A DNA stretch of 64,000 bases from Kudoa neothunni (lineage: Eukaryota; Animalia; Cnidaria). This document shows, in pieces, positions 1 to 38,100 of this stretch. The stretch is taken from positions 4,614,966 through 4,678,965 of the forward strand of contig OZ199840.1 in NCBI GenBank assembly GCA_964304625.1, in the 5' to 3' direction. Under the pieces are notes generated by a model, which saw only the letters and a program-made list of their open reading frames with translations, was not told the origin of the DNA and did not search any database. How positions within the stretch are numbered: position 1 is the first letter of the stretch; every line of letters begins with the position of its first letter. The position numbers and the translations under genes were made by a program.

Positions 1-414
1 AAAGAGTGCTGAACGATGTAAAACTAACATCTAACAACGCAGAAATATTCCATCGCCACTTTTATTCCCGCTTTGACCAATCACATTCAGGATTAGTCAC
101 ATTCATCACAAATCTAAAAGAGCAACAAAGTTTGATTGAACAGGAAATTATGTATCAGCTATGTAATCCAAATACAACAAATCAGAACAAAAAGACGGAA
201 ATAAAAATGGAAAAATTGAAGGAGATATGCTCGAATTATGGTTCCTATTATGGTACATTTTATGTAGAAGCTATATCTAAAACGTATAATTGGAAATTAA
301 AATAAAATTATAGGTACTTTGCGTTTTTTTTCAATAAAAAATTACGGTTGATGTATTTCTTGCATTCGCGCATGCGCGGGTAATCTTTCTCCATCGGCAA
401 AATTTCTCCATTCG
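1..414 (+). mobile_element. 3' remnant of a Mutator-like (MULE) transposon; transposase C-terminal fragment at 6..305
   Basis: ORF 6..305 reads TSNNAEIFHRHFY..SH..LVTFITNLKEQQ, resembling the TNNxxExFH...H....F...LK.EQ block that carries the third acidic residue of MULE transposases. A related decayed copy lies near 50600. Similarity to the duplicated block starts abruptly at 415. Confidence 0.6.
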
Positions 415-3400: not shown

Positions 3401-4814
3401 TGTTAGTAAATTTTAATAAATATTTAGTTTTTTCTTTATTGTATGTCACATAATATTGAGGTACATAAACGTCCGTCTTCATTAATGTGTATCTATTTTG
3501 AAGTTTATAAAAGAAACTTGGATAGTTCGTGCATTTCATTTCATAATGGGGGATCATTAAATCAAATTCTACTTTATTATCATTATTCGTATCATTTGCT
3601 TCGATACAACTTCCATCAGCTGTTCCATCGGCATATTTAACACCCTTGTAATATATTGGGCAATCGACGTTTTTGCATGTTATTGTGCTAAATTTTAATT
3701 TATTTTCGGTTGTGGTAGTTATTGTAACTTGCGGATTTACCAATAAAGCTAATAAAATTTTAGATAGATTGAAAAAACCCGTAAATTACGTATCTCAAGT
3801 CCGAAGATAGTTGGGTCTGTAACTTTTGTATTAACGACTTCAGTAGTATCTGCAACAAAAACTTCCACATATTTGGTTCTCGGAGAAAATTTATCGTATG
3901 CAAATCTTATATCATCTCCTGTGCATGTCCTAACACACTGTCCAACACCAGAACCAGTCTTATTTTCTGGACACGAATCGATTTCTCCATAAACATTCCC
4001 AGGCTCATTTAACTTTTGTATATGACAATGTTTTGAAGTATAATCAGTACCACTTAATACTAAATTAACTTTCATTTTATCATCATGTTTCACAATCTTA
4101 TAGGTAAGCATTTTTGTTGCAGTTGTTTGAGGTTGTGGTGCCACCGGCGTGCTAGCTTCGGCTAATAAAGCATATATGGCTAATATTTAATTAATAAAAT
4201 AAATATAGAGTATAAAATTTACAAACAATTTGAAGAAAAATTCCCATTGCATAGACCGAACATTTCATTGTAATGAAGATAATCTATTGACGAAAATTAT
4301 CGTTTTATTTATAAAATATATCGCGAATTCGTTTTAATGAATGTGTAGATGTTGATTAATAAATTATTTTTTCACATTAGTAAAATTTAATAAGGCTTAT
4401 TTGACCTACGTCCATATTTAACATGAAAATTAAGGATCATGTAAGAATCTATGGAAACATTTTTGGGGAATTTACTTTATACTTCAAATATTAACATTGA
4501 AATTTAATAAATCCACGCATTTTATTATTGTGTAAATTATCTTAATATAATCAATTATTTAATTTACAACTTCAAAAAAGTTCTATTCTTATTATAACGA
4601 TTTCTTTCTACTTTCAAAAAACATAAAATGATTTTATATATACCGTGGTCTGGTTTAAAAAAATACATTATTTCATTTGTCAACATATTTTCCATTAACA
4701 TAAAGTAATTTGCTCTTATTTACTTAGAATACAATAATGTATCAAATATGTGAGATTATTCGATAATTTAAAGGTAAAAAAATTTCATCTTAATGTTAGA
4801 CACAAATTTCAGTT
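415..4814 (-). repeat. Left arm of a large inverted segmental duplication (partner 13178..17101 plus 20120..20585) containing surface-protein gene copy A and its flanks
   Basis: The reverse complement aligns by eye. Examples: gactgtagctatgtt (415) vs aacatagctacagtc (20571); 841-880 vs the flanks of the MULE at 17093/20120; caactgaaatttgtgtc (4814) vs caactggaatttgtgtc (13178). Confidence 0.9.
1299..4268 (-). CDS. Surface-protein family copy A: 10-exon type I membrane protein (signal peptide, Cys-rich FN3-like modules, TM, KNKN tail)
   Basis: ATG at 4268 (MKCSVYAMGIFLQIV), with GT-AG introns at the same positions as copy C. ORFs 3749..4144, 3144..3743, 2732..3196, 1949..2365 and 1504..1857 are its exons. 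The final exon is IIISVIVPVVIVVIGIGFYFGYMKNKN*, stop at 1301-1299. No disruption seen. Confidence 0.88.
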
Positions 4815-5249
4815 GTTTATATAGAACCTTTATATATTTTTAATGTTAAATTCATCCTACATACGATGAGTACAAATCAATCCATCTATATAAGTGATGG
4901 GTATATCTCAAGGCAGCGGCTATGTTACAGGCAATTAATATCACTAAAACTAGCCAGTTGAATTTACTGAAAATTTATATATTAATATAATCCATAACGG
5001 GAAATTTATTTATAAATTTTTAAGCATATACGCATATGTTATGCAGATGGCCGTACAATAACGAACGTGACTTTATGTTAACAGGTTTATTAACATTAGA
5101 AACAGATTAAAAATCAAAGTATTCGTTTAAAAATGTATTAAACAATTTATAAATCTATAACGACAATTTTTCATGATTATGTGCGTGCGACTCATTAATT
5201 TGTGCGCCAGAATACTGAATCTGAATTCATTAAACGTTAGCATGAGGTT

Positions 5250-8200
5250 TAACATTTTTACATACACTCTAGGTTCATCGGACCCTGAGAGAATAGTTGT
5301 TGATTATATTATGGCTCTCTCAATGGAATCAGAAAGTCAAAATTTAGTCTAGCTTCCTAAACATTTATGTTGTATTTTTATTCATATTTATATGATATAA
5401 TGACGTATATGTAGTCTTTTATTTAACCAAAAAAAATTCTATCCTCTTATGTACAAACTGGGTTTAATGGACCCAGTAGAATAATTTGACAATTAACGCC
5501 TTTAACCCTCTAACGACATTGGGGTTTGCTACACTCCAAATCAACTTTAATCTGGACATAACTTCGTACACTTCACATCAAATAATTCGAAATTCTGGCT
5601 ATTATCATAATTTGGTAAGTTACACAAGTTGAGGAACGCTTATAAAAAAATTATAAAATTAAGCTTACTTTTGCATTCAATGCATACAAGAAGTTTAGGA
5701 TTGTTTCTTGGTATTCTTTAATGGAGATATGTGTGAAGAAATTATTAAAAATATCAATATATTTGGATATGATTATTTTAAGGATTCATTGAAAGAAGTT
5801 GATGATGTCGAATATATAGGGTATCTAGGAATGCTTATCTTGATGAAAATTCATCAAGAGATAGCAGAACTTTTTAGTTTATCTGAAGGGAAGCAAATTT
5901 ATCGTCAGCTTTTTTTCGAACCCGTTTTTTTATAAATATCAAAGGCACTACACTTTGGCAATCAAGGCACAAGAATGCAAAGAAATGCTGATAAATTTTC
6001 TGCAATTCGTGATGTTTTGAATATGTGGGTGAACGAATTACCAAAGTACTTTGCACCTCACCAAGACGTCATAATTGACGAACAACTTATCCCTTTTTAA
6101 AGGAAGATGCCCCTTTAGGCAATATATACCTGAAAACCCGGCGGAATATGTCCTCAATATTTCTCCATATCTCGGGGGAAAAATGACGAAAACACTACTA
6201 GATGTATTGGAGTTGGCGAAAGCATTGTTCTTTCGCTTGCATCTCCATTGTACAATTCTGGAACGAACATTGTTTCCGATAATTTTTTTTCGTCGCTATC
6301 ACTCACATGGAAATTACGGCAAAAACGCCTTACTTATCTTTGAACTATAAGGAACAATAAGAGGGATTTTCCTCCATGTGTGCCTCCATCCAGGAACAGG
6401 GAGTTACATAGTACCATATTCCTCTTCCATGAGAAAAATACGATAACGTCATATGTTATCAAAAAAGGAAAGCTCGTTAAGTTGCTATCATCAGGAACAA
6501 ATAATACCAACATACGAAGTCCACAAAATGACAGCACACCACACGTTATAGAGCATTAAAATGGCACAAAAGATGGAGTCGATACTGTTAATAGAATGAT
6601 ATCTTCAGTATCCATAGAAGATGACCAGTCGTCGTATTTTATAATATGATTGACATCTCATTAATCAACGCCTTCTCTATTTATAAAAACGTTTTTAAAG
6701 AAACCCCCCTCCAAAAAAAGAAGAGTTTTTTTACAAGAAATGGCAGAATTATTGTACAGGCCATTTCTTAGTAGAAATACTAAAATTGAAAAAATATTCA
6801 AAAGAAGTCTTACATCCATTAAAATTAAACATAATTTTACTCTAAATTCAAATCGCAACCTAGATGCCAATTACGTTCTCGAAACGACGACTTTATGTTG
6901 TGAAATCTGCCAACGAAGTTATTACAAAGATTACTCGTCAAAACCCTGTTTGTATTTCTCAAAACAAACAGTTGACTTGATTACATATCATATTCTATTT
7001 AGTCGTCTATTTATCCTAGCCAAAAATACACATTTCATTCGCTGGCCGCGTTTATATAAGTTTTCGAATAGTGTGCGAAATCATCCAATAGGACTAAGAG
7101 GGGCTTAATGGTGTCAATATTATGTATTTTCCTAGAAATGTTTCCGAATGAATTTTTTAAAACTTTGCATCTTACTTTATATTAATTTTAAAAATAAAAT
7201 GATCCAACAAAAATCTGGGGTTAAATCTACCCCAATGTCCTTAGAGGGTTAATGGAAATCGTACGGTTGCTTAGTTATCAATGCTATTGGTCCAAACATT
7301 TCAATTATTCACCTATTTCGGATGCACTCTCTAGAGATAGATTTGAGCAACTGTCTAAATTTTTACATTTTAATAATAATGATAATGCAATTAACGATCA
7401 ATCGTCCCAAACGTTTGACCGGTTTGTCAAAAATAGACCTTTTTGGAGATTTTACGGGAAGCATTTTTAAAAATAACTCCATAGAACATAAATTCAGTGG
7501 ACGAACAGATAATTCCCTCTAGGGGTAAATGCAGGGAAAAACTGTATATATCGAATAAATCTACCAAATGGGGATTCAAAGTTTTTGCTCGATGTGGAAT
7601 AAATGGGATAATACATGATTTTCATTCGTATGATTGAAAGTCGCCAGTTGTACAACAAAGCTGTGATTTGGTTTCTAGGGGTTTTGTAATAAAATTGTGT
7701 GAACAACTTCCAAAAAATAGGATGTATCTGTTGTATTTTGACAGATGGTTCACATCATTTCAAATGCAACTTATATTGAAAAAAGGCGAATATATTCCGT
7801 AGGGACTATTCCAAATAACAGAATTAAAGGGTGTCCCTTACTCTGTAAAAGAGATCTAATAAAAAACGACGTGACTCATTTGATGTTTCTTAAAACTCTA
7901 ATGATGCATTGATATTAACTCTATGGCATGATAGCTCTGTCGTGACTTTATCATCCACTCCATTCTGGTAGTGAACTTCTAACAACTGTAAATAGATATG
8001 ATAGTCGGCAAAAAAATGCTTTAAAATCGAATTCGTAGCTGTTGTATTTGAATATAACAAAAGTATGGGAGGTGTTGATTTAGCCGATAAGTTGATATCG
8101 TTATATAGATTAAATTACAAATGTAAAAAATTTTACATGAGAGTATTTTTTTCGGGCATCAACACCGCGATCACTAATTCGTGGCTATTGTATCGTAGAC

Positions 8201-10190: not shown

Positions 10191-11560
10191 GAATTTTAAT
10201 TTCAAATAGATGGATTGTTCTTATAAGAATAAAAGCATGATTCTATAATTTCACATGTTTTGCATGATCTAGCTGATTAATAATGATACAACCGCCTTGT
10301 TGGTTTTGTTAAAACTTTAAAAGTTGAGAATTAATGATAAGCTTGATAATCTTGTGTATTTAGAATGGTGTTTTTTCCGAATTAATAGCGAGAAATTTTT
10401 CTTTTAAATTTAATTTTTGGAATTAAATTATAAACAGATTGAGATTTACAAATGTTCGATTGGGTAAGAAAAAGCAAATGATCCACGTAAGAACCATGAC
10501 ATATACGGGCGGGTGCGCGAGTATTTAGAATGAAGTTGTTATTTTACTTTTAATTTAATCTAGGCATTCGTGGTTTCATCTTATTTAATCATTTATCTCT
10601 ATATTTATTTCAATTTTTAACAATGATGCAATTAGATTCTATTACAGCTGAAGAACGGAATAAAATATTATTGTAAAAAACGAGTTTAAAATTTTAATTT
10701 CTAATAATGACGAAAAGATATGATAACTAAATCTAAAACATGCAATTGGTTCCAATATATTATTCGCTTTTAATACTTATTTATAATTATAGGCACTTTT
10801 CGGTATTTAAAAACAACTTTAATTACAATATTAAAATTTTTACAATTAAACATAATTTTCAATAATTAATAATGATGTTTTAGGTTTAAAATTTTGTTAG
10901 CGGTTTTCTCTTGCTAAATTTAAGAGGTATTTAATTAATAATGGAAGATATTTATCATTGGGTTTTTTAAACCGTTGTTTCCCACATTAATAAAAATACA
11001 AATTTATACATCGTTTATAATAAAAAATATAACACCTATAACAAATTTATTGAAAAATTTTTAGCATAATTATTTAACTTGTTCGAAATTATTTATTTTC
11101 ATCATAATGACCAACGAACCCACTCTATGGTGTAATATTGTAATATAACTTTTTCTCTTTATTTGTCTATAATTTAATTAATTGATGAAAACCTATTTCT
11201 CAAAGATAAATTTTACATTAAAAGTTATATAAAATTAAAATATTATAGATTTCAGGAATACAAAATAAAATATTCCTTTGCAGAAGAACAAATTTAAATG
11301 ATCTTGTGCAAGTACAACAAAAACTTTCGCCTCCTATAATAATTATCTTTTTATATGTAAAGATTCGCTTAAACAGAAAAAACATCCATATAACTGTTAG
11401 ATTGCGCAGACAATAAAACAAAACTTAGTAATGTTTCGAGATTAAATTAGTGTATGATTATTTTCAAGAAGGTTATACGTGAAAATTATTTTTCTATTAC
11501 ATCATTTTAATATTTCTGTTAAGTTCTAGATATACTTTAATCCATATGCATAGTCACGTG
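10180..11560 (-). repeat. Internal fragment of the TA-flanked CAGTCAACAACGG-ended element family (other copies 20581..22170 and 53655..56822)
   Basis: The reverse complement matches about 55480..56625 and 21600..22170. ORF 11218..11421 is nearly identical to ORF 21823..22011. Confidence 0.8.
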
Positions 11561-12602: not shown

Positions 12603-13724
12603 ATCTAATGAAAACTCGTCATTTGCTCCAAAACATAGTTCTACTGTGCCCCAGGAATAGCAGACCTTAAGAAATTATTGAAACATGCCTTTCTTCAAAA
12701 ACATCTTAATATTTTTGTGTGGGACACTTAAATTTTAGAACTTCGATATTTTATCAAATTCTATTGTTTCCCACAATCCTCACATAACGCGGGTGTTTTC
12801 CTCAAATGTTTTTATCCTGCAAAAATTTAAAACTAGCCTCTTCTGAAGAAGTTATCGATGAAACGAAATCGGAACTCATTTTGGAGCGATTAAAATCTGT
12901 GTAATCTCCTTAATCCGGGTCCACAATTCACCACTAATGTCCTTTTTTTAATACGAACAATCGTGCAAAAAAGAAATGTGTAAAAACACATGCTCGAGGG
13001 TGTTTTATAGGTGCTGCATACTTTTAATTACCGACAATAATTATACTAATAATGATATAATGATTATCACTAGTTTCATACTGTGCATACACCTTATTTA
13101 CAGGAATAAAAGAGGGTATTAAAAGCGGACTGTAATTAATCAGGATTATGTTTATGTCGCAATAGTTCACATGTGCCCAACTGGAATTTGTGTCGAATAT
13201 TAGGAAGAAATTTTTTTACATTTTAATTATCGAATAATCTCACATATTTACTACATTGTTATATTTTAAGTAAATAAGAGAAAACTACTCTATGTTAATG
13301 AAAAATATGTTGCAAAATAAAATGTGTTTTTTAAACCAGACCACGATATATATATATAAAATCATTCCATGTTTTTTGAAAGTAAAAAGAAATCGTTACA
13401 ATAAGAATAAAACTTTTTTAAAGTTATAAATTAAAAAATTGATTATATTGAGATAGTTTACACAATAATAAAACGCGTGGACCTATTAAATTTCAACGTT
13501 ACTATTTGAAGTATAAAGCAAATTCCAAAAAAATGTTTCCACAAGTTCTCACGTGATCCTTAATTTTCATGTTAAATATGGATATCGGTCAAATAAACCT
13601 TATTAAATTTTACTAATGTTAAAAAATAATTTATTAATCAACATCTATACATTCATTAAAACGAATTCGCGATATATTTTATGAATATAACGATAATTTT
13701 CGTAGGATGATTAACCTCATCAAA

Positions 13725-16692
13725 ATGAAATGTTCAGTCTATTCAATGGGAATTTTTCTTCAAATTTTTTGTAAATTTTATACTCTATTTATTTTATTAA
13801 TTAAATACTAGCCATATATGCTTTATTAGTCGAAGCAAGCACACTGGTGGCACCACAACCTCAAACAACTACAACTAAAATTCTTACCTATAAGATTGTG
13901 AAACATACTGATCAAATGAAAGTTAATTTGGTATTAAGTGGTACTGCTTATACTTCAAAGTATTGTCATATAAAAAAGTTAAATGACGCTGGGAATGATT
14001 ATGGAGAAATCGATACGTGTCCAGAAAATAATACTGGCACAAATACTGGACAATGTGTTAGGGCTTGTACAGGAGATGATATAAGATTTGCTTACGATAA
14101 ATTTTCACCAAGAACAAAATATGTGGAAGTTTTTGTTGCAGATACTACTGAAGCCGTTAATACAAAAGTTACAGACCCAACTATTTTCGGACTTGAGATA
14201 CGTAATTTAAGGGTTTTTCAATATATCTAAAATTTTATTAGCTTTATTGGTAAATCCGCAAGTTACAACAACTACCACAACCGAAAATAAATTAAAATTT
14301 AGCACAATAACATGCAAAAACGTCGATTGCCCCATATATTACAAGGGTGTTGAATATGCTCCTGGAACTAAAGGAGGAAGTTGTATCGAAGCAAATGATA
14401 CGAATAATGATAATAAAGTAGAATTTGATTTAATGATACCCCATTACGAAATGAAATGCGCGAGCTACCCAAGTTTTTTTTATAAACTTCAAAATAAATA
14501 TACATTAATGAAGACGGACGTTTATGTACCTCAATATTATGTGACATATAATAAAGAAAAAACTAAATACTTTTTAAAATTTACTAATAAATTTCCATTT
14601 GAAATTTGTAAATTCAGCATAAAAAAAGCATCGACCGAAATTACTGAAAGTACAACAAATGATTACAAATCAAATTGTGGCGCCGCAAATAAAGATTGTT
14701 ATGCACCATGTAACAACGTTGAGCTTATTTTTGAGGCATCAGAAGGGGTCGTTGAAATTTTAATTCAATCAAGACATTTCCCGCTTCAAAAATTCGGAGC
14801 TGTATACTATGGATACAAACAAAAAAAATATGGTAATATATATTCATTTGTTTGAAATATTATATTTTTAGTCGTGACCGAGACTGATGCAGCTGATGAC
14901 TCTGGCAAATTGCTATCAAATTATTTAGCAACTGGTGTCACGTTAAATGTTCCTTTATTTAAACCGAGCGATATTAACACCAAATTTTCCGAATGTACCG
15001 TAAGTTACTACGCTGCTGATAAACCAATGCCTACAGCTACCATTGCCACTTCAACTGGAGCAAAATGCAGTAGTACTTCAGAACCAACATCATGTCTCGC
15101 AGACTGTGCCACTTCATTAACAATAATCCAGCTGACACCCGGTAAACCTTATATTCTTGAAATTGCTGCAGCAGGAACTGCACCAGGAGAAACCAATAAA
15201 ATCCCAGCTAATTTTAAAGAACATATATTCTTCAGAACGAGTAAAATTATGAAAGTTCCTAATGATGACGTATATATTTAATTTAGAGAATGACGCAGAA
15301 AAAACATTTCCAATTGTTTCACCGACAATACGAGATACAGGTCTATCTATTAAGGCACTTACTGTAGAAACACCGATTTCCAAAACTAGCACCACATGTG
15401 CTTATTATCTAAGTCCCCGAGGAAAGGATACATATGTTTGTGCAATGTGCGTTGATAGTTATCCATGCAGAGGATATTGTGGGGAGTCTCAAACTATTGT
15501 AGGGTTATCTCCAGGAACCGATTATGATCTCAAAGTTGTTGCGCATGAAGGTTATGATTTCAAAGTTCACCAAATCAGAACTGGTATTATATTTTTACCA
15601 AAAATAAATGAACAATTTTTAAGTTTTGTCAACACTTACACTTGAAAAACAAATGTTGGATAGAGGTTTTAAAGTCACAGGGTCCTTATCGTCGCCTTAC
15701 CCAGCAGCCGTATGTCATTACAAAGTTAAAGTTAAACAAGGAGAAGATTATGGACTAATTTACGAATGTCCAGCACGAACTCCAACAAGAGCTGCTGGAA
15801 GTTCTACTCTCGTATCAACATCAAAAATGGGGGTGGCTAGATCATCAGGAGACCAACGAAACGTAAATGCAGCAACTGCCACCAATACAAATACAATCTC
15901 ATCGTGCCAAGCACCACCTTTATGTAGCAATATCATTTTTAGTGAAGGATACGAATCAGATAGGGATTATCAAGTTTTAGTGACTGCAGTTGGAAGGTCC
16001 ATTGAAGTTTCAATAAATATACCCAAAAGTATTTCCTCATAAATTTTTATACAACCACTCTTAAAATTGAATTAATACTACAACGAAAATTAAAAAATTT
16101 ACCAATGCTATTTAAAATTATATTTTAGACCCATTGCTTTCACAACCCACGGATCTCAATAAACAATTAATAGTGGTGATCACACGTGTCGATAAAACCT
16201 TGACTGTTAGCACTACTTTACCTCAAGGTTTGGACGAAAATGCATTATGCAAATGGCAGTTAAAAAATTCTGGAGAACCCTCAAATCCCATCGTGAAAAA
16301 ATGCATGACTATTGGTAAAGGTTGCACTCAATTACCTCGTTGCAAGGAATTCACAATTACAGAAGTTGAAGATATACACGATTACCATTTGACTCTATTC
16401 TATAATGAAGATCCAAATACCTACGGTGTTGGAATAATTAAACAAGGTAACCATCATAATATTTCAATGTTAATTATAAACATTTAATAGGTGAATCTTC
16501 AAACAAATCAACGTAACTTTTGATATGTCATCATTATTTCTAATTTCTTTTAGATCCAAAAATACGATGTATTAATAATCAATTTTGATTATTTTAATAA
16601 TTATCTTTAGAATTATTTCCGTGATTGTTCCAGTTGTTATCGTGGTTATCGGAATAGGTTTCTATTTCGGATACATGAAGAACAAAAATTAG
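13725..16692 (+). CDS. Surface-protein family copy B (intact, 10 exons)
   Basis: ATG at 13725 (MKCSVYSMGIFLQIF; an in-frame upstream ATG is at 13707). Exons correspond to ORFs 13847, 14247, 14874, 15262, 15626 and 16134, plus two micro-exons and a TM exon ending MKNKN* at 16692. All splice sites are GT-AG and in phase. Confidence 0.88.
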
Positions 16693-17101
16693 AACTCTCA
16701 AATCAAAATATTATTTAAGCTTTTTATAATTATTTAGAAAATATAATTTTTTATAAACTTGGAATTATTTCCATCTTATTTAACTATTCGCTGATTTTTA
16801 ATTTTATCAAACTGTGGATTTCTACACGTACATTTTATTATTAAATTAATTTAATGATAACTTCGACATTCTATTAAATGAAGGTTTTAATTATGATAGT
16901 GTCTCTTCCCTCCAAGGATGGCAATTTCGTTCGCGTTTGTTCATTAGTACTTTATGCAAATTAGGAGTCTTGCGAGCGATCGCGAACTTACCACCCCCGC
17001 CTTAGACTACTGGAAGATTCTAAATATCGAAAGCTAAGATGCTAGTAACAGTTATTTTCGGGACCTACCGGCAACTCGAGCTCCGAGTGTTTTTTTTCTA
17101 G

Positions 17102-20580: not shown

Positions 20581-22170
20581 CAGTCAACAACGGTTGTTGC
20601 ACATTTTTCGTTGTGTGTCATTATTTTATCGTTTTATAAAGTACAGTTCTATCTCATAAGTCTTTTAAGCTATTAATGAAATATTTGGGATTATTTATTT
20701 AAGAATTTTTTTACAAATACTAGAAAATGGATATTACGCACTAATTTTAGTCACCGTTAAACTTAACACTATCTTAAAATCGAAGTGTATCGTCATTATT
20801 TGATGATTTTTATTTTAAAGAACTAGAATGAAATTAAACGTTTTTCTATTTTCATATTAATAAAAATGATCCAGGGTTAATTCATTAAATAACAAAAGTT
20901 TAACTAAAAGTCAATGCAGAAAAACGGAAATATTTTATAATTATAAATTTTATCCACGTGCATAAATTTATTAGTATCTTTGTTTTATTTCAGGATTGCG
21001 CGTTGTTTTTTAAAACTGAGTAGATTCGTTGATCTCAAACTATATGTGTGGTCATTGTACATAAATAAAAATTTAATATTAGAAAGTTTTGTACGCTTTA
21101 ATTATTAGATTGTTTCAGGGCTAAATCAACTCTAATATTTTTCATAAAATAGATGATAAAATTACGGAATTAATTTCTTCATTTGAGTGTAGTTTAATCG
21201 CTGATCAAATCTAAATTTTTTTTAAAAACAACGTAGAAAGTATTTTTATTATATTTAATGTAAATAACGTAACTACGACAAATGGAGAACGATAACAATG
21301 TGGATCGCATTTAAATATTTTTTATATAAAACTGTGGATTTAATTACGAAATACAAATTGATTTCTTTGATACATATATCCCTGAGAGCCTAATATCAAT
21401 GATCAAATTGATGAAAAATCAAATATACATGGTCCGATAGAATCTTGGAGGAATCCGACCAACGACAAGCGATTATGACAAAATAATTAAATTTAGCATT
21501 CTTTCGGTTTAATGAATCAATTAAAATCAATAATTATTGATTAATACTAAACTAAAATATCTATCTTTACAATAGGCGAGAAACGTGTATAATGGTTCAA
21601 ATGGATTAACTCATTCACTAAATCTTATATGAAATATTAAAATGATATATTAAAAAAATAATTTTCATGTATAACCTGTTGGAAAATAATCATACACTAC
21701 ATTAATCCCGAAGCATTACTTAGTTTTGTTTTATGTTTTCGCAATCTAACGGTTATATGGAGCAGAATTTTTATTTTATTTCGTTTTAAATCCCCCAAAA
21801 AGATCGAACTAGCATTATATGGATGTTTTTTCTGTTTAAACGAATCTTTACATATAAAAAGATGATAATTATTATAGGAGGCGAAAGCTTTTGTTGTACT
21901 TGCACAAGATCATTTAAATTTGTTCTTCTGCAAAGGAATATTTTATTTTGTATTCCTGAAATCTATAATATTTTAATTTTATGTAACTTTCAATATAAAA
22001 TTTATCTTTGAGAATAAGATTTTCATCAATTAATTACATTATAGATAAATAAAGAGAATAATTATATCACAATATTGTACTATAAAGTGGGTTTGTTTGT
22101 CATTATGATGAAAATAAATAATTTCAAAAAGTTAAATAATTATATTAAACATTTTTCAAATAAATTTATC
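20581..22170 (+). mobile_element. Truncated copy of a TA-flanked CAGT-ended (Tc1/mariner-type) non-autonomous element, fused to the promoter of copy C
   Basis: TA followed by CAGTCAACAACGGTTGTTGCAC at 20581 matches the TIR of 53655..56822. The segment 21015..22170 matches about 54890..55830. Similarity to the gene promoter begins near 22172. Confidence 0.75.
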
Positions 22171-22302
22171 AAAAGTGTTTCCAAAGGTTCTTACATGATC
22201 CTTAATTTTCATGATAAATATGGATGTAGATCAAATAAACCTGATTAAATTTTACCAATGTGAAAAAATAATTTATTAATCAACATCTACACATTCATTA
22301 AA

Positions 22303-22345
22303 ACGAATTCGCGATATGTTTTATAAATAAAACGATAATTTTCGT
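22303..22345 (+). promoter_or_regulatory. Putative proximal promoter motif conserved upstream of all four surface-protein copies
   Basis: acgaattcgcgatat..(AT spacer)..aacgataattttcgt lies about 20-65 nt before the ATG in copies A (4290-4332), B (13661-13703) and C. It is also recognisable in the divergent copy D (48403-48445). Confidence 0.45.
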
Positions 22346-22366
22346 CAATAGATTATCTTCATTACA

Positions 22367-25335
22367 ATGAAATGTTCGGTCTATGCAATGGGAATTTTTC
22401 TTCAAATTGTTTGTAAATTTTATACTCTATATTTATTTTATTAATTAAATATTAGCCATATATGCTTTATTAGCCGAAGCTAGCACGCCGGTGGCACCAC
22501 AACCTCAAACAACTGCAACAAAAATGCTTACCTATAAAATTGTGAAACTTGATAATAAAATGCAAGTCAATTTGGTATTAAGTGGTACTGCTTATACCTC
22601 TCCAAACTATTGCCATATAAAAAAGTCAAACGAGGTTGGTGCAGCATATGAAGAGATTAATACATGCCCTGGTGCACATGATCAGCACAGTACTAACAAA
22701 TGTGTTAGAGCATGTAATGGGGGAGAGAATAAATTAACTTACGATAAATTTTCTCCGAGAACCAAATATGTGGAAGTTTTTGTTGCTGCTAATGCTGAAT
22801 CTGCTTCTACAAAAACTACAGACCCAACTATCTTCGGACTTGAGATAGGTAATTTATATTTTTTTAAAATTAATCTAAAATTTCATTAGCTTTACTGGTA
22901 AACCCACAAGTTACAATAACTACTACAGCTCAACGTAAATTGAAATTTAGCACAGTAACATGCAAAAACGTCGATTGCCCAATATACTACAAGGGTGTTG
23001 AATATGCGCCTGGAACTAAAGGAGGAAGTTGTATAGCAGAAAATGGTCTGAATAGTGCTAACGAAGTAGAATTTGATTTAATGATCCCCCATTATGAAAT
23101 GAAATGCACGAACTATCCAAGTTTCTTTTATAAACTTCAGAATACATACACATTAATGAGCACAGACGTTTATATACCCCAATATTACGTTACATATAGT
23201 AACAAAGAAAAAACTAAATACTTATTAAAATTTACAAACAAATTTCCTTTTGAACTTTGTAAATTCAGCATAAAAAAAGCATCGACCGAAATTACTGAAA
23301 GTACAACAAATGATTACAAATCAAATTGTGGCGCCGCAAATAAAGATTGTTATGCACCATGTAACGACGTTGAGCTTATTTTTGAGACATCAGAAGGGGT
23401 TGTTGAAGTTTTAGTTCAGTCCAGACATTTTCCGCTCCAAGCAAATGGAGCCGAATATTCTGGCTACATACAAAAGAAATATGGTAATATTGATTAAGTT
23501 GTTTTTAAATAATGTGCTCTTAGTTGTTACGGAAACTAATGCTGAAAATGACACTGGGAAATTACTATCATCGTACTCAACAGTTGGTGTCACGTTAAAT
23601 GTAGCTTTATTTAAACCAAGTGATATTAACACCAAATTTTCCGAATGTACTGTAAGTTTCTACGCAGCTGACAAACCAATGTCTACCACCGGCACTACGG
23701 CACAATGCAATACTTCTGGTACACCCCAATGTCCCACAGACTGTGTCACTCCATTAACTATATTACAACTTGCACCCGGTAAACCTTACATTCTCGAAAT
23801 TGCTGGATCAGCAACTGTATCAGGAGGAGAGAATAAAATTCCAACTAATTTTAAAGAACATATATTTTTCAGAACAAGTCAATGTATAAAAATATCTACA
23901 TAATAATTACATGAAAATTTAATTTAGCGAATGAAAATACAAATACATTTTCTACTGTTACACCAACAATACGAGATACAAGTTTATCTATCAAGGCACT
24001 TAATGCTGAAACGTCGATTTCCCAAACTAGCACCACATGTGCTTATTATCTAAGTCCCCGAGGAAAGGATACATATGTTTGTGCAATGTGCGTTGATAGT
24101 TATCCATGCAGAGGATATTGTGGGGAGTCTCAAACTATCGTGGGGTTATCTCCAGGAACCGATTATGATCTCAAAGTTGTTGCACACAAAGATTATGGTT
24201 TCAAAGTTCACCAATTCAGAACTGGTAACATATTTTTTCATAAAATAATAATTAAATAATTTTTAAGCTTTGTCAACACTTACACTTGAAAAACAAATGT
24301 TGGATAAAGGTTTTAAAGTCGCAGGGTCCTTATCATCGCCTTACCCAGCAGCCGTATGTCATTACAAAGTTAAAGTTAAACAAGGAGAAGATTATGGACT
24401 AATTTACGAATGTCCATCACGAACTCCAACAAGAGCTGCTGGAAGTTCTACTCTCGTATCAACATCAAAAATGGGGGTGGCGAGATTATCAGGGGATCAA
24501 CGAAACGTAAATGCAGCAACTGCAACCAATACAGCTACAATCTCATCGTGCCAAGCACCACCCTTATGCAGCAATATCATTTTTAGTGAAGGATACGAAT
24601 CAGATAGGGATTATCAAGTTTTGGTGACTGCTGTTGGACGCTCTGTAGAAGTTTCAATAAATATACCCAAAAGTATTTCCTTAGAAATTTTTATATAACC
24701 ACTTTAAAATTGAATTAATACTACAACGAAAATTAAAAAATTTACTAATGCTATTTAAAATTACATTTTAGACCCATTGCCTTCACAACCCACGGATCTC
24801 AATAAACAATTAATAGTGGTGATCACACGTGTCGACAAAACATTGACTGTTAGCACTACTTTACCTCAAGGTTTGGACGAAAATGCATTATGCAAATGGC
24901 AGTTAAAAAATTCTGGAGAACCCTCAAATCCCATCGTGAAAAAATGCATGGTTGTTGGTAAAGGTTGCACTCAATTACCTCGTTGCAAGGAATTCACAAT
25001 TACACAAGTTGAAGATATACACGATTACCATTTGACTCTATTCTATAATGAAGATCCAAATACCTACGGTGTTGGAATAATTAAACAAGGTAACCATCAT
25101 AATATTTCGATGCTAATTATAAATATTTAATAGGTGAATCTTCAAACAAATCAACGTAACTTTTGATATGTCATCATTTTGTCTAATTTCTTTTAGATCC
25201 AAAAATACGATGTATTAATAATCAATTTTGAGTATTTTAATCTTTATCTTTAGAATTATTTCCGTGATTGTTCCAGTTGTTATCGTGGTTATCGGGATAG
25301 GTTTCTATTTCGGATACATGAAGAACAAAAATTAG
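22367..25335 (+). CDS. Surface-protein family copy C (intact), 841 aa. Exons 22367-22412, 22456-22848, 22890-23483, 23524-23877, 23928-24224, 24268-24672, 24772-25089, 25134-25155, 25197-25211, 25254-25335
   Basis: Hand-spliced: nine GT-AG introns of 40-99 nt join into one 2526-nt open frame. It begins with the hydrophobic signal peptide MKCSVYAMGIFLQIVSIYALLAEA and ends with the TM helix IIISVIVPVVIVVIGIGFYFGYM plus KNKN*. Confidence 0.9.
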
Positions 25336-26332
25336 AACTCTCAAATCAAAATATTATTTAAGCTTTTTATAATTAATTATCAAATATAGTTTGTTATTAT
25401 CTCCAATTTACTCAAGTATTCGCTGATTTTAATTTTTATTAAAGTATAGATTTCTACTCTATTAATTTTTTTGAATTATTTTACTGGCAACTGGCATTTT
25501 ATGCAATAAATGATTTAATTGATTTCAATTATTAAATTCAAGTAAATTTGTAGATCAACTTAAAATAAAGATGTTAACGCTAATTTATCATTCCTTGGTA
25601 CATTTTGTTCTCTTTTATAATCTTATTTATTTAATTTTTCTAAATATTAATATATCAGTAATTCCTAAATAATTTAAATATTAGTTCCTATCTCCCACAC
25701 AGTTGCTAAAAATTAACAGTTCAAATGCATAAAAAACGAGAAAATTTAATCTGACACCGACACAAGATGGATATTTTTACTCGAAGTAAAAAAAATGCAA
25801 ACCCAAACATTCTATATATTATTATTGATAAAAAAATTGTTCAAAATATTATCTGTAACAATCGGCATCCATTCGTCTTATTAATAATTCCCAATAAACA
25901 GACTCTAACTATTTATTAAAAAACCATTTTACACATTACTTAAATCAAAACGAAATTTAACATTCATATAGATTAACTTGAAGTTGTACAAAATTAGCAA
26001 ATATAAATATCAATCAAATCTATATGATTATTCACTCAGGCAAATTTCACCTGCTAAGCTCTCAAATTTCAACACATGCATTAGTCTTGCTTGGATAAAT
26101 GATTTAATATTTTTAACGTATAAAACTTACCGAACAATACCCCCTATTAATCTAATATTTAATTTACCACAAAGGACAAAAAATTTCACAAAAAAAACAA
26201 AAATAAGAGAAAGAAATATATAGACTGCAAACAATATGGCATACAAAACAACTAACACAGAATTATTTAGTGTAGAAGCGGGAATTAAAATAAATCAAAA
26301 TAGAGAGGGATTGATATGAGGAGAGTATGGAT

Positions 26333-32104: not shown

Positions 32105-35100
32105 TTATTGTTGGGTTACGTTAGTATCGCAGCAATTTTCCAACAATTGTTCCCAGCGTTCTTCAAAGAAGGAAGACATACTTTTACATGCAATATAGAT
32201 CTAAAAATTCAATAAGTGATCATTTTCCAACTAAATATATCTCAAATATGCATACCTCAGATTCGGATTGATTGAAACGTCTGCAGTTTTCAAAAATAAG
32301 ACGTACGTCGGCAACAAATTCATCGCGATCTTTGTATCTTTACAACAAAAAAGTCAGAACTAATGATCGAAAAATGAAAAATCGATTACTCAAGCGCTTT
32401 CAATTTCAGGTCTATTTGATGCAGATCAATTGGTTTTCTGATAACTTGAAGGTATAGAGGATATTTTTCAAGATCAACAGGTTTTGTGAATTCTTCCGCA
32501 TTTGGGTGGTCGTATAGTTCATGCAATAAAACGTGGCATGGAGTAAACATCTCACAAATGTCCATTTTGAATTTTTTCGAAATACGTTTTCTTCCAGATT
32601 CAACCACGGTTTTTGATGTGCGGCAAGCCTCGCAACAACTGGGACAGATGTAGAGGTCATTAGCGCTACTTTGCAATGCACTCATCATATCAACACATTG
32701 TCGATGGTGATAATAGAGACAAAGGGAACATCGTATAGGTTCCATCACGTTTTCATCTTCAATCTCGTTTTCATTCACGCTCTCATTCATATTATCAATT
32801 TTAGTATCTACAGCCAAGTCATCTTCATTGTCGGATTGCAGTTCACATTCAATCATTTGTTTAGGTGGATTTTGGAATGTGGATGTGTTACATTCACGAC
32901 ATATGGTGAACGAATTTTCTTGAGCATTCAGGCAGATCAAGCTCTTACAATGATTACAACTCCAGGTCTTTTGATCCACAAGCGAGAGATCTTCTTGGAA
33001 GCCTTGACAATACAAATGATGGGATTTGTGGCAGTACATGCAGCTTATAACGCTGTCAAAATTAACGTTAAGATGACACTTGTAGCAGAATTTGTTGTGG
33101 ATTGGTGATACTAATGGTGGCGGTTGAGGAATGTTGCTGCCATTTTTGTTGTTATTGTTATTATTATTGACATTGGACGAAGCGGGTTCAAGAGATACGT
33201 TCAACTGCAACGAAGTGAGAACCAACTCTAAATCATAGCAAGCATCACCGCAACTTTCAATGAAATCAATCAAGCTTTTAATGTATCGATTTTTTGCCTC
33301 TCTGGAGTTGGTTTTGGCTTTTTTAACCAAAGCAATGAGACCTCTGGCGTCAAGCATGTTAATAAGTTGTGCCAGTTTGGATTTGAATACAGGAACAAAA
33401 TCTTTGCTCTTTAAGTCTGTCGAAAGATCGATGGTTTCGAGTTCATGATCATCAAAAACGTTTTTCTTTCGAATAAAATCCACAAACTGATTGTACTGAA
33501 GATGGACAATTCGATTCACTGTAACACCATAATTTTTCTGTACCCAAGGGGAAGATTGGACCACATAGAACGTTTCATCAGAATTAAATGAACTGGAGAG
33601 ATCTCGATAGAATTTACTCGGTGAAAGTGCATCATCAGACATATTTTTGATGTTACGATTCAAATTTTTCGACAACATTCTTTCTCTCATTCCCAGATTA
33701 TTTAGACTTTTTAATAACGCGCGAAAATCGTTCATATTTTCAATCAGCATAAGGCGAGTGAATCCGTTAGTTTGCTGTGTTGTCAACGAGACTGAATCTT
33801 TATTATCATCGTTATCCAATTCAAGCTTGATATCTTCGTCATTACGATGTTCAGTTGCAACCGATGGATCAGCAAAAGGATGAGCAAGTGGAATATGTTC
33901 TTGTTTGACATCAGTGGCGAGAGTATCCTTATTGATGGTATTGTTTTGTTCGGTAATAGAATCACAAGTAATATGAGTGATTGGATTGTCATTTTGGTGT
34001 GGTTCGGGTGAAGCAGGAGATTTACTGTTAAGGAAATTGTCCAATTCAAGTTCACCAGGATTATGTTCTACGAACACACAACTAGAATGATAGAGGATGG
34101 AATAGAAGCGCGAAAAACGATCTTGTCCAATAAACGGTCCTTTAAATCGCCTGAAGAAAGCATACCACCAATCTTTAAGCACCTTCTGAATGTTATCAAG
34201 ATAATCGCTGAGTTGTTTGCACTCCTCCATTGTTTTAGGTAGAGGCGTGGTATTAGCGTCAAATTTGACGGCCTCCAATAGCAACGGATCACTCACACTA
34301 ACCACATTGTGGTTGTTTTGGATGGAGTTTTTATTTCTGTTGTTTCTCCTAGAGGAATTGTGATCATCGTCATCGTCTTCCTCATCATCAATTTCGTTAT
34401 CCTCATCATAAGCAGCCGAGTTTTCATCTTGATCTTCCACGTCAACATTGGCGTTGTTTGGTGGTCCTTCCGCGGTGGCTTCAGCATTTTCATCATTATT
34501 GCCACCATTTGGAGGGTTGTCAGCTGTTTCTCCTAGAGGTGATTCTGACTGTTGTTCCGCTGTTGCAATATGTGAAGAATTTGTAGTCGTTTCTAATTGG
34601 GGTGATTCCGACTGTTGTTCCACTGTTACAAAGTTTGAAGAATTGATCGTTGTTGCCAATTGAGGAGATTCTGATTGTTGATCCACTGTTGCAATATGTG
34701 AAGAATTGGCAGTTATTTCCAACTGAGGTGATCCTGACTGTGGTTCACCAATCGCAACAGGTTCTGTAACGATTAGATGGCCTTCCGTCTGATTATTTTG
34801 ATTAGCAGTAACATTCTCCCCCTCATTAGCTTGAGTCGAGGCGTTTTGTTTTCTTGCCAACAAGGTCATATGACGTTTGAGTTTTCTGATGAAACTTTCC
34901 ACATTCCATTTAGCCCCTTTGATTGCTTGGAAATCATTTGAAATCACATCCAAATTGTTCAAGATGCAAGGAGTTTTGGTAAGCGTATTGTTAAGGAACA
35001 ACAACACAGTAGATTTCAATAGAGGGCTCAATTTGAGAGGGGATGGGTTAGATTTGAGTGCATGAACAAGTGCTTTTAGATCTCTGTTGTAGCTGAGCGA

Positions 35101-38100
35101 GGACGCGAACTTCAAATGAGCAATGCTCTCAAGATAATCTTCAACGAACAGACGTATGATGGTTAGCATGTTGATGCTGTTAAACCGTTGGCTCACATCG
35201 AATTCGATTTTCATATCGTAACAAGCTGAGGGTAGTGGGAGCTTTTGATTCAGATAGGTCTCAAGTAGACATTCACACAAACACAAAAAGGGGCTGTTAA
35301 CCAAGTCCAACACGTCACACTCACCAACATCATCACACTTGTCAAAATTATCACTATCATTGTTAGTTGTGGTAAGTGTAATGGCGAAAATATCCTGTAT
35401 CACACTGCCAAAGGATGGCAGTACACTTAGCCGATTTTCCAATGGGAACAACTGATAAAATTCTTGCACAAATTCGAACACGGACGCTAAATTGGACATT
35501 GTAGCACACGCCTCCGCTTCAGACATCGACTCTCTAGCGGCGCAAATCAAGTTGTCAATCTGTAGATCACTGAACATAGGTATGTGGTTGGGTTGATCGA
35601 TTGTTTCATCGTCGAAAGCTTGTTTTGGCATTTTTACATATTTATTGCCAGGTCCATTCACAACACGCTCTTTGGAATTGGACGTTTTACCAACACGTTT
35701 GGATTTTGATTTAAGAAGTGAAATGGATCCGTTTCCCATAGAAATTGATTTTTTGTTTTTTCCCGAGCCACCAGCAGATAAATTAGACTGGTCATCATTA
35801 GGTGTTTCGTTAAACTTCATTCGTTTAGCTTTCGAGGGGGTTTTGGAGGTGGCGCCTTTAGGGCGTCCTCTTTTTTTGGTGATAACCAACTGTGGTGGAT
35901 GTCCAGAAGTGACCATGGTAGCAATTGCTGTTTGTTGAGAGTTGTCTAAAGCCTCCGTATTGTTCGATTGATTCAAAAACACTTCATCTCCGTTATTTGA
36001 CAAATAAGAGTTCGTGAGACCATCATCGAACTCGCCAACTGAATAACTTTCTGGTCCACCACTAATAGATTGATGCCCGAGATCGTGAGAGGTTGATGGT
36101 CCTGGTTTTTCTATTAAAGAATCAGATGTTTTGGAGTTTTTCTTTAATCGTGGCACTTTGCCTATTGTACGAGTGTCCATATTGAAATGGATAGTGTTAT
36201 CAAAGTTGAAATTTTCAGGAATCAATTGAAAATTGAAACCCTCAGGTTGATTTTTGAGAAATCGTGATACCTCCCGCTTCGATCTCAATTCATAATCACC
36301 AATTGCTTCTGGTACCGCGTAGACAACAAACTTTTTCAGCACCTTAGTTTCGTATCCATATTTGGATCGGGAGATTTTGCGCTTGAATCCATAATCCATA
36401 GGTTTGAATTGGTCTTCGATAGGTAAAGACTCTGGCAACAATGACATCGACTCATTCAAATGAGCACTTGTGTTTGGTTCTTCGTTAGCTGTTGTTCCAA
36501 TTAAAGCGTTACTTGGCAACTTCATTTGATGGAAACTCGATGCAACCTTGTGTGACTGTCCAATTATGGGAAAATTATTACTGGAAGGTCCCCCCACCAA
36601 AGATTGCATCGGATTGAACACTCCGTTCTTGATATCGGAGGTGGCTGGCTGGTGATAAGAATGAAGAGTAGGAATAGGATAGGGAAGAGATTGGTCTATT
36701 GTGACTAAAGAATCGCCAGTTGCTATATTGCCACTAGTGTTGTTTGGTAATGCTAAAAGGTGAGTCATTAAAATATTTTTTAATGAACCTATAAACAAGA
36801 ATGCACAAACTCCGGCACTCATTGAACCTTCATTAAATTCAGATTAATGGTATTATTTTAAATGAAACGAAAAAAATCATTCGATTATTTAACTTTGATT
36901 GGTTTATTTAAATATTGAATATATCAAGAACACCTAATGAAGCTATTAAACAAATTTATTGGAGTTTTTTATTGTATAAAAACCATCAAAAAAAACCCTC
37001 TAAATAGGCAAAAAGATTTATTACTATTGGTCACCTCACCATGTACCCCATGTACCCCATGTACCCCATATGCCCCATGTGACCCATGTGATATAGAGAA
37101 AGCGTTTTTATAATAGAAGTTCATGTCACAATTTTAATTACTTCTTCCTGAGTGTGTGTGTGTGTATGTGTGTGTATAGAAGAGGAGAATAAAATCATAC
37201 AGGTATTGGGCGGATTTATGATTTAAAAATTCGTTGAACAATGCTGATTCGAAGTTAAGGTTCAATTAAAATAAGATTAATGATTAAAGTGAGTTTTATA
37301 AACGATGCGAAATTATATTTATATTTTGTGTAAAAATCAATGTTTCCATAGGAAGAATAAAAACTAAAAAAACTTTGTGTCAACGTTTATTTTACACACG
37401 TTAAAGCTGATAATGAGTACATATTAATGGGCAATTTAAACCGCACTTCACATATTACATATGGGCACACAACTACTTTGCCCACCAAAAGTGTATCTCA
37501 CATTTAATTCAGCTTATTTTTATTTCCCAGCTAAAACGACTGAAATTCGAAACAAAGTTGATGACAAGAATAGAAAATTTAATAACGCCTGGTCAGAAAA
37601 ATATGGTTTTATTCAACGGGGGACGAATATTATTTGTTTTCTATGTCATTCGCTATTCAATTTAAAGCATTCAGTACACAAGTTATTTATCGATTATTTT
37701 GAATATTGCGCTTCGAAATTCGAAAATTCATTCAAAGTGCGAGCTATAACTTTAGTTTTAAACCTCCTGACCCCTGGAAACTTTCAAAGATTAAAATTTG
37801 GCTCAACGCTCCAAAAGTTTGTGCACCAATAGCTCAAAACTTACCACTATTCGAAGAGTGAATAGGAGTGCCACTCATACTTCCGACGCCACCACCAACG
37901 CAAATAGTGGGATTGTTATTGTCCAAACAATCCGGCCCACCACAAACATTCATGTTCTTCGGAAGATACATCAACGGTGGTTGATACATTTTGAGTGGTT
38001 CTTTGTGTGAGGACAATTCCAGTGATGGCAATTGAGTATTGTTACCAATTTCATTGTGAGGATTAATAGGGTTGATAGGAGTGGTCTTAGTGTTTTCGTT

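Follow-up and report, generated by a model that had tools for sequence, protein, structure and literature searches.

The 64,000-nucleotide stretch of chromosome 3 of the parasitic cnidarian Kudoa neothunni analysed here (GenBank assembly GCA_964304625.1, contig OZ199840.1, positions 4,614,966 to 4,678,965; hereafter the window) carries four copies, A, B, C and D, of one family of multi-exon genes, which were located by self-comparison. Coordinates are those of the window unless positions on chromosome 3 (OZ199840.1) are stated. A search of the whole assembly recovered four further full-length copies (E1, E2, E3 and O7) and one 3′ fragment (E4p), all outside the window, together with more than 30 matches at 66–69% identity elsewhere. 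Copy C, the gene under study, belongs to a cluster of at least eight paralogues that occupies approximately 90 kb of chromosome 3 (Table 1). It is intact, as are A, B, E1, E2 and O7; D carries a frameshift in exon 3 and lacks approximately 800 nt, from the middle of exon 5 to the middle of exon 7. E3 and C have 1.15 kb of 5′ flank in common. E3 (chromosome 3: 4606886–4610977, forward strand) and A (373–4477, reverse strand) form the arms of an inverted repeat of approximately 4.1 kb, 93.9% identical overall and 97–98% identical in the inner part, in which the 3′ ends of the two genes face each other. The arm ends lie approximately 4.4 kb apart in the assembly; should E4p be a duplicate of A created by the assembly, the real spacer would measure only approximately 1.5 kb. 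The sequence directly 5′ of C (21901–22179) recurs at 11031–11310 (reverse strand) and 55614–55852 (forward strand), and likewise 21237–21468 and 55072–55303; these recurrences within the window are 77–90% identical and represent a dispersed repeat that flanks some family members.

Copy C comprises nine exons. Exon 1 is 46 nt long with a GT donor in all copies, exons 2–7 are symmetric phase-1 exons, and the introns measure 40–99 nt and have GT/AG borders; exon borders and frames are kept in the other intact copies, and the splice sites of exons 8 and 9 in all copies. The coordinates that an earlier, sequence-only reading of the window had given for exons 2–5 are correct, all four being phase 1-1 with GT/AG borders. 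The predicted product has a signal peptide, approximately seven β-sandwich domains resembling fibronectin type III (FN3) and immunoglobulin (Ig) domains, and, towards the C terminus, a transmembrane helix with a tail of five residues. Each phase-1 exon supplies one or two of the domains, so that counted by exon the product would have six modules. Its hydrophobic N terminus, the hydrophobic stretch at the C-terminal end and the short basic tail point to a type I membrane topology and to a probably surface-exposed product. Exons 2, 3, 4 and 5 encode 4, 8, 4 and 5 cysteines in 131, 198, 118 and 99 codons, respectively, with a single CXXC motif, which is not the composition of a Giardia-type variant surface protein (VSP; more than 10% cysteine and multiple CXXC motifs).

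The nine copies were aligned, and the affinity of C along its length was followed with a 100-nt sliding identity scan and with the Viterbi path of a copying model. C switches its nearest relative repeatedly, with approximately 20 changes seen by the two methods, as the sequence-only reading had proposed; with all donors offered, the path consists of 21 blocks drawn from A, E3, E2, B and D. In the scan, the identity of C to A is 98–100% over 22250–22500 and drops to 54–55% at 22600–22700, where the nearest copies are E3 (72–75%) and D (67–69%). Farther downstream, C is 98% identical to B at 23244–23344, 97–99% identical to A at 23344–23494 and 100% identical to E2 at 23973–24120, after which it is approximately 100% identical to A to the end of the 3′ untranslated region (UTR). 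The tracts in the variable half of the gene are approximately 40–400 nt long and have sequence of other affinity on both sides. Exon 2 alone passes from A-like sequence (to 22557) through E3/D-like to E2-like sequence at its 3′ end, and the affinities of exon 3 run, in order, D/E3, B, E2, A, E2, B and A.

All peptide motifs quoted in the sequence-only reading are present, and several of its assignments stand as described. The promoter, the signal exon and the start of exon 2 follow A (22176–22557 at 97% identity, including 208 nt at 100%), two stretches follow B (22943–23025 and 23249–23337, the latter at 99%), the segment 23338–23604 follows A together with intron 3, and the 3′ exons and UTR follow A from 24074 through the 3′ UTR. 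Other assignments hold in part. The rest of exon 2 and the start of exon 3 had been described as D-like, and 22607–22942 indeed follows D with only A, B and D offered, but E3 and E2, which lie outside the window, match these D-like parts of C better and are preferable to D as donors. Some of the B-like parts also match E3 or E2 better. The segment encoding LFKPSDINTKF (23605–23660), said to match B, takes B as donor in the path restricted to A, B and D, but the match is weak (86% identity, versus 90% to E3). An extra residue before the first cysteine is found in C and D as claimed, but it is not specific to them and is probably ancestral, because E1 and O7 carry it too. The sequence that D was reported to share with A and with B is real, at only 86–88% identity. 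Between C and D, which is a true pseudogene, a tract at 22790–22942 is 90–98% identical, and D may have been its donor or its recipient.

The pairwise homoplasy index (PHI) test detects recombination among the seven full-length copies (z = −22.9, p ≤ 0.0005), after removal of E3 (z = −18.2, p ≤ 0.0005), among A, B, C and D alone (z = −12.1, p ≤ 0.0005) and within 22456–24224 (z = −19.2). In a Sawyer-type permutation test of the longest run, the C–A fragment at 22323–22530 spans 88 polymorphic sites, where permutations give 20 on average (p ≤ 0.0005), and further fragments link C to B (23263–23362), to A (23398–23512) and to E2 (23953–24206), each with a pairwise p ≤ 0.0005. C, on the forward strand, and A, on the reverse strand, have runs of 208 nt and 421 nt without a mismatch at polymorphic sites. 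A 3SEQ-like maximum-descent analysis recovers C as a recombinant of A × B, A × E2, A × E3 and A × D (p ≤ 0.0002). For the four copies of the window, on which the sequence-only reading had suggested a recombination check, the PHI value and the A × B and A × D descents are significant, and chance is far from explaining the pattern.

Maximum-likelihood trees of donor-defined segments place C in turn as sister of A, E3, E2, B and A, with bootstrap values of 100, 94, 99, 100 and 100. The trees of these segments conflict for other copies too, A being paired for example with B (bootstrap 100) or with E3 (99–100). Of 11 donor-defined segments, 10 are incompatible with the global topology in approximately unbiased (AU) tests, with a summed log-likelihood difference (ΔlnL) of approximately 309. 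With fixed 200-nt windows, the global tree is rejected in 8 of 17 at p < 0.003 (Bonferroni; summed ΔlnL 361), and the sister of C across these windows is A, E3, E2, B, A/E3, E2 and A. A single duplication tree is therefore rejected, as the sequence-only reading had held, given the AU rejections and the conflicting clades at 94–100% bootstrap.

The exchange extends to silent and non-coding positions. C has no synonymous difference from B over 23249–23337, versus seven from every other copy; over 23114–23248 it has two from E2, versus 7–11 from other copies; and over 23947–24073 it has none from E2, versus 11 from A. Introns 1–5 take the affinity of the adjoining tract: intron 1 follows A (0/43 mismatches), intron 2 follows E2 (1/41 mismatches versus 6–9), and intron 4 follows E2 and A (0–1/50 mismatches, and 0/50 to E2, versus 11–13). 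Because synonymous sites and introns travel with the tracts, homologous DNA has been exchanged, and protein convergence does not account for the pattern. Exon shuffling was considered and rejected, since the switch points do not match the exon borders.

Divergence is unevenly distributed along the gene. The synonymous divergence (dS) among cluster copies is 0.41–0.46 in exons 2–4 versus 0.07–0.09 in exons 6–7, and introns 6–8 differ by 0.035–0.05 within the cluster versus 0.20–0.27 from the outgroup O7 (for intron 6, 0.04 versus 0.27). The uniform 3′ half thus reflects homogenization (concerted evolution) and not purifying selection alone, because silent sites and introns are uniform too. In exon 2, the non-synonymous divergence (dN) is 0.20 and dS is 0.41. 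The ratio dN/dS is 0.2–0.5 per exon, with a few 20-codon loop windows near or above 1 on small counts. From its sequence, the variable half appears to be a conserved framework with hypervariable loops, and no claim of positive selection is made.

Mosaicism is not confined to C. Every other copy is resolved by the copying model into 14–29 blocks; A contains tracts of C, E2, B and E3 affinity, and B is likewise mosaic. Stretches free of substitutions reach 973 nt between A and E3 and 930 nt between E3 and E2, and the A–E3 tracts are consistent with conversion from one arm of the inverted repeat to the other. A second cluster of ten copies, at 0.86–0.95 Mb of chromosome 3, gives a PHI z of −58. 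Paralogue trees in the K. neothunni genome are consequently not readable as duplication histories.

Table 1 Copies of the gene family, exons of copy C and principal tracts of differing affinity along it.
Feature	Position	Strand	Description
Copy C	22158–25400	+	Mosaic under study; 5′ flank, nine exons and 3′ UTR, from self-comparison, genome search and alignment
Copy A	1234–4477	−	Intact; inverted relative to C; 91% identical overall
Copy B	13529–16754	+	Intact; 88% identical to C
Copy D	46223–48255	−	Pseudogene; 77% (5′ part) and 92% (3′ part) identical to C
E1	chromosome 3: 4572322		Upstream of window; intact; 86% identical to C
E2	chromosome 3: 4601256		Upstream of window; intact; 88% identical to C
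E3	chromosome 3: 4606886–4610111	+	Upstream of window; 91% identical to C
E4p	chromosome 3: within 4612124–4614765		Upstream of window; 3′ fragment of a family gene
O7	750 kb away, same chromosome		Intact; 80% identical; served as outgroup
Exon 1	22367–22412	+	Start codon and first part of hydrophobic, signal-like peptide; ends in phase 1
Exon 2	22456–22848	+	Distal module, 131 codons; most variable exon
Exon 3	22890–23483	+	198 codons; two predicted tandem FN3/Ig-like β-sandwich domains
Exon 4	23524–23877	+	118 codons; module with variable Cys-bounded loop
Exon 5	23928–24224	+	99-codon module; 23953–24206 100% identical to E2
Exon 6	24268–24672	+	Membrane-proximal module, homogenized among cluster copies
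Exon 7	24772–25089	+	Membrane-proximal module, homogenized among cluster copies
Exon 8	25134–25155	+	Short stalk
Exon 9	25254–25337	+	Hydrophobic, putative transmembrane stretch, 5-residue basic tail, stop codon
Tract	22323–22530	+	208 nt, 100% identical to A; promoter-proximal flank, exon 1, intron 1, start of exon 2
Tract	22558–22736	+	Old; nearest E3 (80%); nearest in window D (71%, versus A 55%)
Tract	23114–23248	+	Nearest E2, 96% versus at most 89% for others
Tract	23249–23337	+	99% identical to B, at most 83% to others
Tract	23338–23604	+	98% identical to A; end of exon 3, intron 3, start of exon 4
Tracts	23841–24073	+	99% identical to E2; end of exon 4, intron 4, exon 5

The clustered paralogues have very probably exchanged sequence repeatedly through non-allelic homologous recombination in short tracts, of which interlocus gene conversion is the simplest form. 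The tracts are short, are bounded on both sides, span introns and silent sites and link copies in opposite orientations, which bears out the segmental conversion or recombination proposed in the sequence-only reading. Paralogues of the cluster take part whatever their relative orientation. Towards the membrane, in the 3′ half of the gene (exons 5–9 with their introns and the 3′ UTR), the exchange has very probably homogenized the copies; in the distal 5′ half (exons 2–4), old divergence persists, and overlapping tracts of different ages have very probably built the patchwork. As a result, the variable loop blocks set in the conserved framework are combined differently from copy to copy. The exchange may well have been non-reciprocal.

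Several circumstances weigh against this conclusion. Direction and non-reciprocity of transfer are not readable from one genome, and the donor-defined segments were picked after inspection of the data, which the fixed-window and permutation tests mitigate. The mosaics are known here from assembled consensus sequence, and the source was diploid and possibly a mixed parasite population. The assembly totals 40,260,978 bases: three contigs of 17.15, 12.04 and 11.05 Mb and a fourth, mitochondrial one. Its GC content is approximately 30%, and most introns are 40–50 nt long. These figures match the published K. neothunni assembly, with 40.2 Mb in three chromosome scaffolds and a circular mitochondrion, an N50 of 12.0 Mb, a GC content of 30.4% and a median intron of 49 bp (Weber, Paulini and Blaxter 2025, PMC12239612). 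The published assembly was built with hifiasm-meta from HiFi reads of infected yellowfin tuna, scaffolded with YaHS and then passed through purge_dups, at approximately 7× k-mer coverage, and the authors report residual haplotypic duplication (PMC12239612). Directly before the window, chromosome 3 has exactly 200 N (4614766–4614965), probably a YaHS scaffold gap, and the 2.65 kb to the left of it (4612124–4614765), which hold E4p, are a 98.6% identical direct repeat of window positions 1–2631. The neighbourhood is therefore not flawlessly assembled. E4p was considered as an independent partial pseudogene, but this is no longer the reading that we favour: the fragment borders the gap at the end of a contig and duplicates the other side, and is probably no separate locus, because a gap with a direct repeat is what an overlap or haplotype left uncollapsed between two joined contigs would produce. 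E3 and E4p each have 8–10 single-base indels, and three of these fall inside the 973-nt stretch that is substitution-free relative to A. Such a distribution points less to the decay of a pseudogene than to consensus errors where coverage is low, close to the end of the contig, and makes the pseudogene status of E3 doubtful.

The mosaics could alternatively be chimeric consensus sequences, joined from paralogues, haplotypes or strains in a low-coverage meta-assembly. The coverage, the residual duplication, the near-identical duplicate at the gap on the left window edge and the indel-only differences of E3 and E4p all favour such an artefact, which we nevertheless regard as very unlikely. The 64-kb stretch that carries A, B, C and D has no gap and no N, and the recombination signal persists without E3. 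The same signal is found in all copies and in the distant cluster, and many of the tracts are old (80–96% identity), which an artefact cannot yield. The blocks of 40–400 nt are far below the typical length of HiFi reads. A typical read of this kind would cover all 3.3 kb of a copy and reach into the unique sequence on either side. Moreover, the assembly methods section describes no polishing step, and hence no short-read polishing that could have copied patches between paralogues (PMC12239612).

Reciprocal unequal crossing-over, followed by duplication of genes that were already chimeric, could also have produced mosaics without gene conversion. The cluster is tandem or inverted with repeated flanks, including the 1.15 kb upstream that C and E3 share, copy number clearly changes in a family of at least 150 members, and single-breakpoint chimeras are expected in such arrays. 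However, a very large number of crossovers would be required for approximately 20 switches within 3.3 kb, and this in each of the copies; the tracts are bounded on both sides by sequence of other affinity, and the 100% identical tracts join C to the inverted A, where a single crossover would invert the 18 kb between them. This account is thus unlikely, with the qualification that double crossovers are indistinguishable from conversion. That no exchange took place at all, and that rate heterogeneity, saturation or convergent selection on the loops mimics changing affinity, is extremely improbable. The hypervariable loops, in which the proportion of non-synonymous differences (pN) approaches that of synonymous ones (pS) in a few 20-codon windows, and the high divergence could create homoplasy, but synonymous differences number 0–2 to the donor versus 7–11 to other copies, introns change their nearest relative in step with the exon sequence beside them, the PHI test, which compares neighbouring with distant sites, is strongly significant, and the AU tests let branch lengths vary by window. 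Short-tract exchange between paralogues, most simply by gene conversion, remains the account that we prefer.

The family to which C belongs is large. A profile of the exon-3 module, searched against the genome, found at least 150 scored places (342 candidates; all scored places with E ≤ 1e-56) on all three chromosomes, in many internal clusters and mostly without stops. For a genome in which only 5,316 proteins are predicted, such a family is very large. It may be poorly represented in the published annotation, because that annotation used protein hints only; very few transcriptomic reads mapped to the parasite (PMC12239612). Against 1.84 billion representative proteins, the exon-3 profile has only 15 matches, all unnamed fragments from ENA and Logan assemblies, which are 26–75% identical to K. 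neothunni copies. Two of the 15 come from one run, SRR31175926; the contig tested is almost without DNA similarity to the K. neothunni genome. The Logan contigs of this run derive from a different compact eukaryote and carry exon-sized open reading frames (ORFs) of the family, approximately 37–41% identical, beside genes for SNF5 and ribosomal protein S14. From these few outside relatives, the family is lineage-restricted yet not limited to K. neothunni. An exact-product look-up of the exon-3 ORF of C returned nothing, and no description of the family was found in the literature searched.

The exon-3 module was modelled with AlphaFold2 as two β-sandwich domains (predicted local distance difference test (pLDDT) score 87, from an alignment of 71 sequences); an alignment of 23 close paralogues gave an unusable model (pLDDT 49). 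In the model, the domains have the seven-stranded β-sandwich characteristic of FN3. The module did not reach the gathering score of Pfam FN3 (PF00041 and its clan), with sub-threshold matches to NDNF Fn3 (E 0.013) and Dep-1 Fn3 (E 0.06). Foldseek retrieved tandem-FN3 modules of cytokine receptors (E 2e-4, probability 1.0) with template modelling (TM) scores of only 0.27–0.38, which are low because the angles between the domains differ. Each half is structurally similar to Ig-like and FN3 domains in VIA-align (Z 6.5–7.5), for example to fibronectin module 1 (Z 6.5 and root mean square deviation of 2.6 Å over 80 residues). In the ESM Atlas, a TM of 0.53 to gp130-like proteins was obtained, and the feature search gave only a meaningless match at 0.76. 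With Z values that are middling, the likeness of the predicted model to FN3 and Ig-like domains is a resemblance at fold level only.

Recombination mosaics are a familiar route by which parasites diversify exposed proteins, and have not previously been described in this animal group. In the VSG (variant surface glycoprotein) genes of Trypanosoma brucei and the var genes of Plasmodium falciparum, variable blocks carried by a conserved scaffold are recombined into new sets through segmental conversion or ectopic recombination among the members of a large archive. As in these families, the variable part of the Kudoa protein is membrane-distal and the conserved part membrane-proximal; mutually exclusive expression and switching within an infection have been demonstrated for VSG and var, whereas the Kudoa family is known from its evolutionary footprint alone. 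Among metazoans, the polymorphic mucin (SmPoMuc) genes of Schistosoma mansoni and the vertebrate MHC and KIR genes are host–parasite or immune families diversified by frequent recombination or conversion among clustered paralogues. Their proteins are unrelated to the Kudoa family, which has far more copies and an FN3-like architecture with one module per exon.

The closest documented parallel is the msg superfamily of Pneumocystis jirovecii, in which mosaic genes arise through ectopic recombination (PMC5676039). Both are large families of surface proteins, exposure being predicted for Kudoa, with recombination within the family; pseudogenes and partial genes take part in the case of msg (PMC5676039) and may do so in Kudoa. 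As in Kudoa, the msg mosaics share perfectly identical fragments of approximately 100–1000 bp with a parent gene, and they were detected with sliding-window and hidden Markov model methods on one long-read assembly (PMC5676039); the same study also mentions mosaics and pseudogene donors for VSG. As fungal, subtelomeric genes, the msg members encode glycosylphosphatidylinositol-anchored proteins of unrelated fold; the Kudoa genes, in contrast, form many internal clusters distributed over the three chromosomes, are intron-rich and encode predicted transmembrane proteins of FN3/Ig-like modules.

Within the Myxozoa, VSP-like and RIFIN/STEVOR-like candidates for variant surface proteins (18 genes) have been proposed for Sphaerospora molnari (bioRxiv 10.64898/2026.02.11.705288). 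Like the Kudoa family, they are myxozoan membrane proteins that cross the membrane once and end in a short basic tail at the C terminus, and their genes are duplicated and restricted to the lineage; both are proposed as a basis for antigenic variation. The S. molnari candidates have CXXC-rich ectodomains with more than 10% cysteine, whereas the Kudoa family has a few per cent cysteine, FN3/Ig-like domains and at least 150 copies. The same preprint does not mention gene conversion; it states that antigenic variation has been observed in myxozoans and calls its molecular basis unknown (bioRxiv 10.64898/2026.02.11.705288). The mosaics may have a role in antigenic or binding diversity. A tentative extension, to which we give only a small chance, is that the family of at least 150 members is the archive of a system of antigenic or binding variation in a cnidarian parasite, with conversion generating mosaics on the time scale of an infection or of the host population. 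If true, this could supply the molecular basis that is lacking for antigenic variation in Myxozoa, where such variation has been reported. The locus is a concrete candidate, being part of a very large lineage-restricted family whose distal modules are reshuffled, most simply by gene conversion, and whose proximal modules are kept uniform. Myxozoans are major parasites of fish, and Kudoa species spoil fish muscle.

Elsewhere in the window, a single-exon ORF of 889 codons at 61325–63994 (forward strand) encodes a metazoan Argonaute of the Piwi clade, in which Piwi, PAZ and Piwi_N domains are recognized. Its identity to bilaterian PIWIL1 does not exceed 40%, and nothing was found in an exact-product look-up. 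On the reverse strand, a 1478-codon ORF at 32386–36822 has WSD and bromodomain matches of a BAZ-like chromatin protein and contains three 63-nt tandem repeats at 34508–34746. Another, of 256 codons at 52046–52816 (reverse strand), has a sub-threshold match to DUF659 (27.1 bits versus a cut-off of 34.7) and may be a transposase-derived remnant. Rfam gave no match within the 64-kb window. On the mitochondrial contig, the stretch 1216–5445 has a GC content of 42%, versus 30% in the nuclear genome, and contains a COX1 of only 459 codons that is very divergent; eight TGA codons in it are read as tryptophan, and AGA stands at two conserved arginine positions, as in the cnidarian code.

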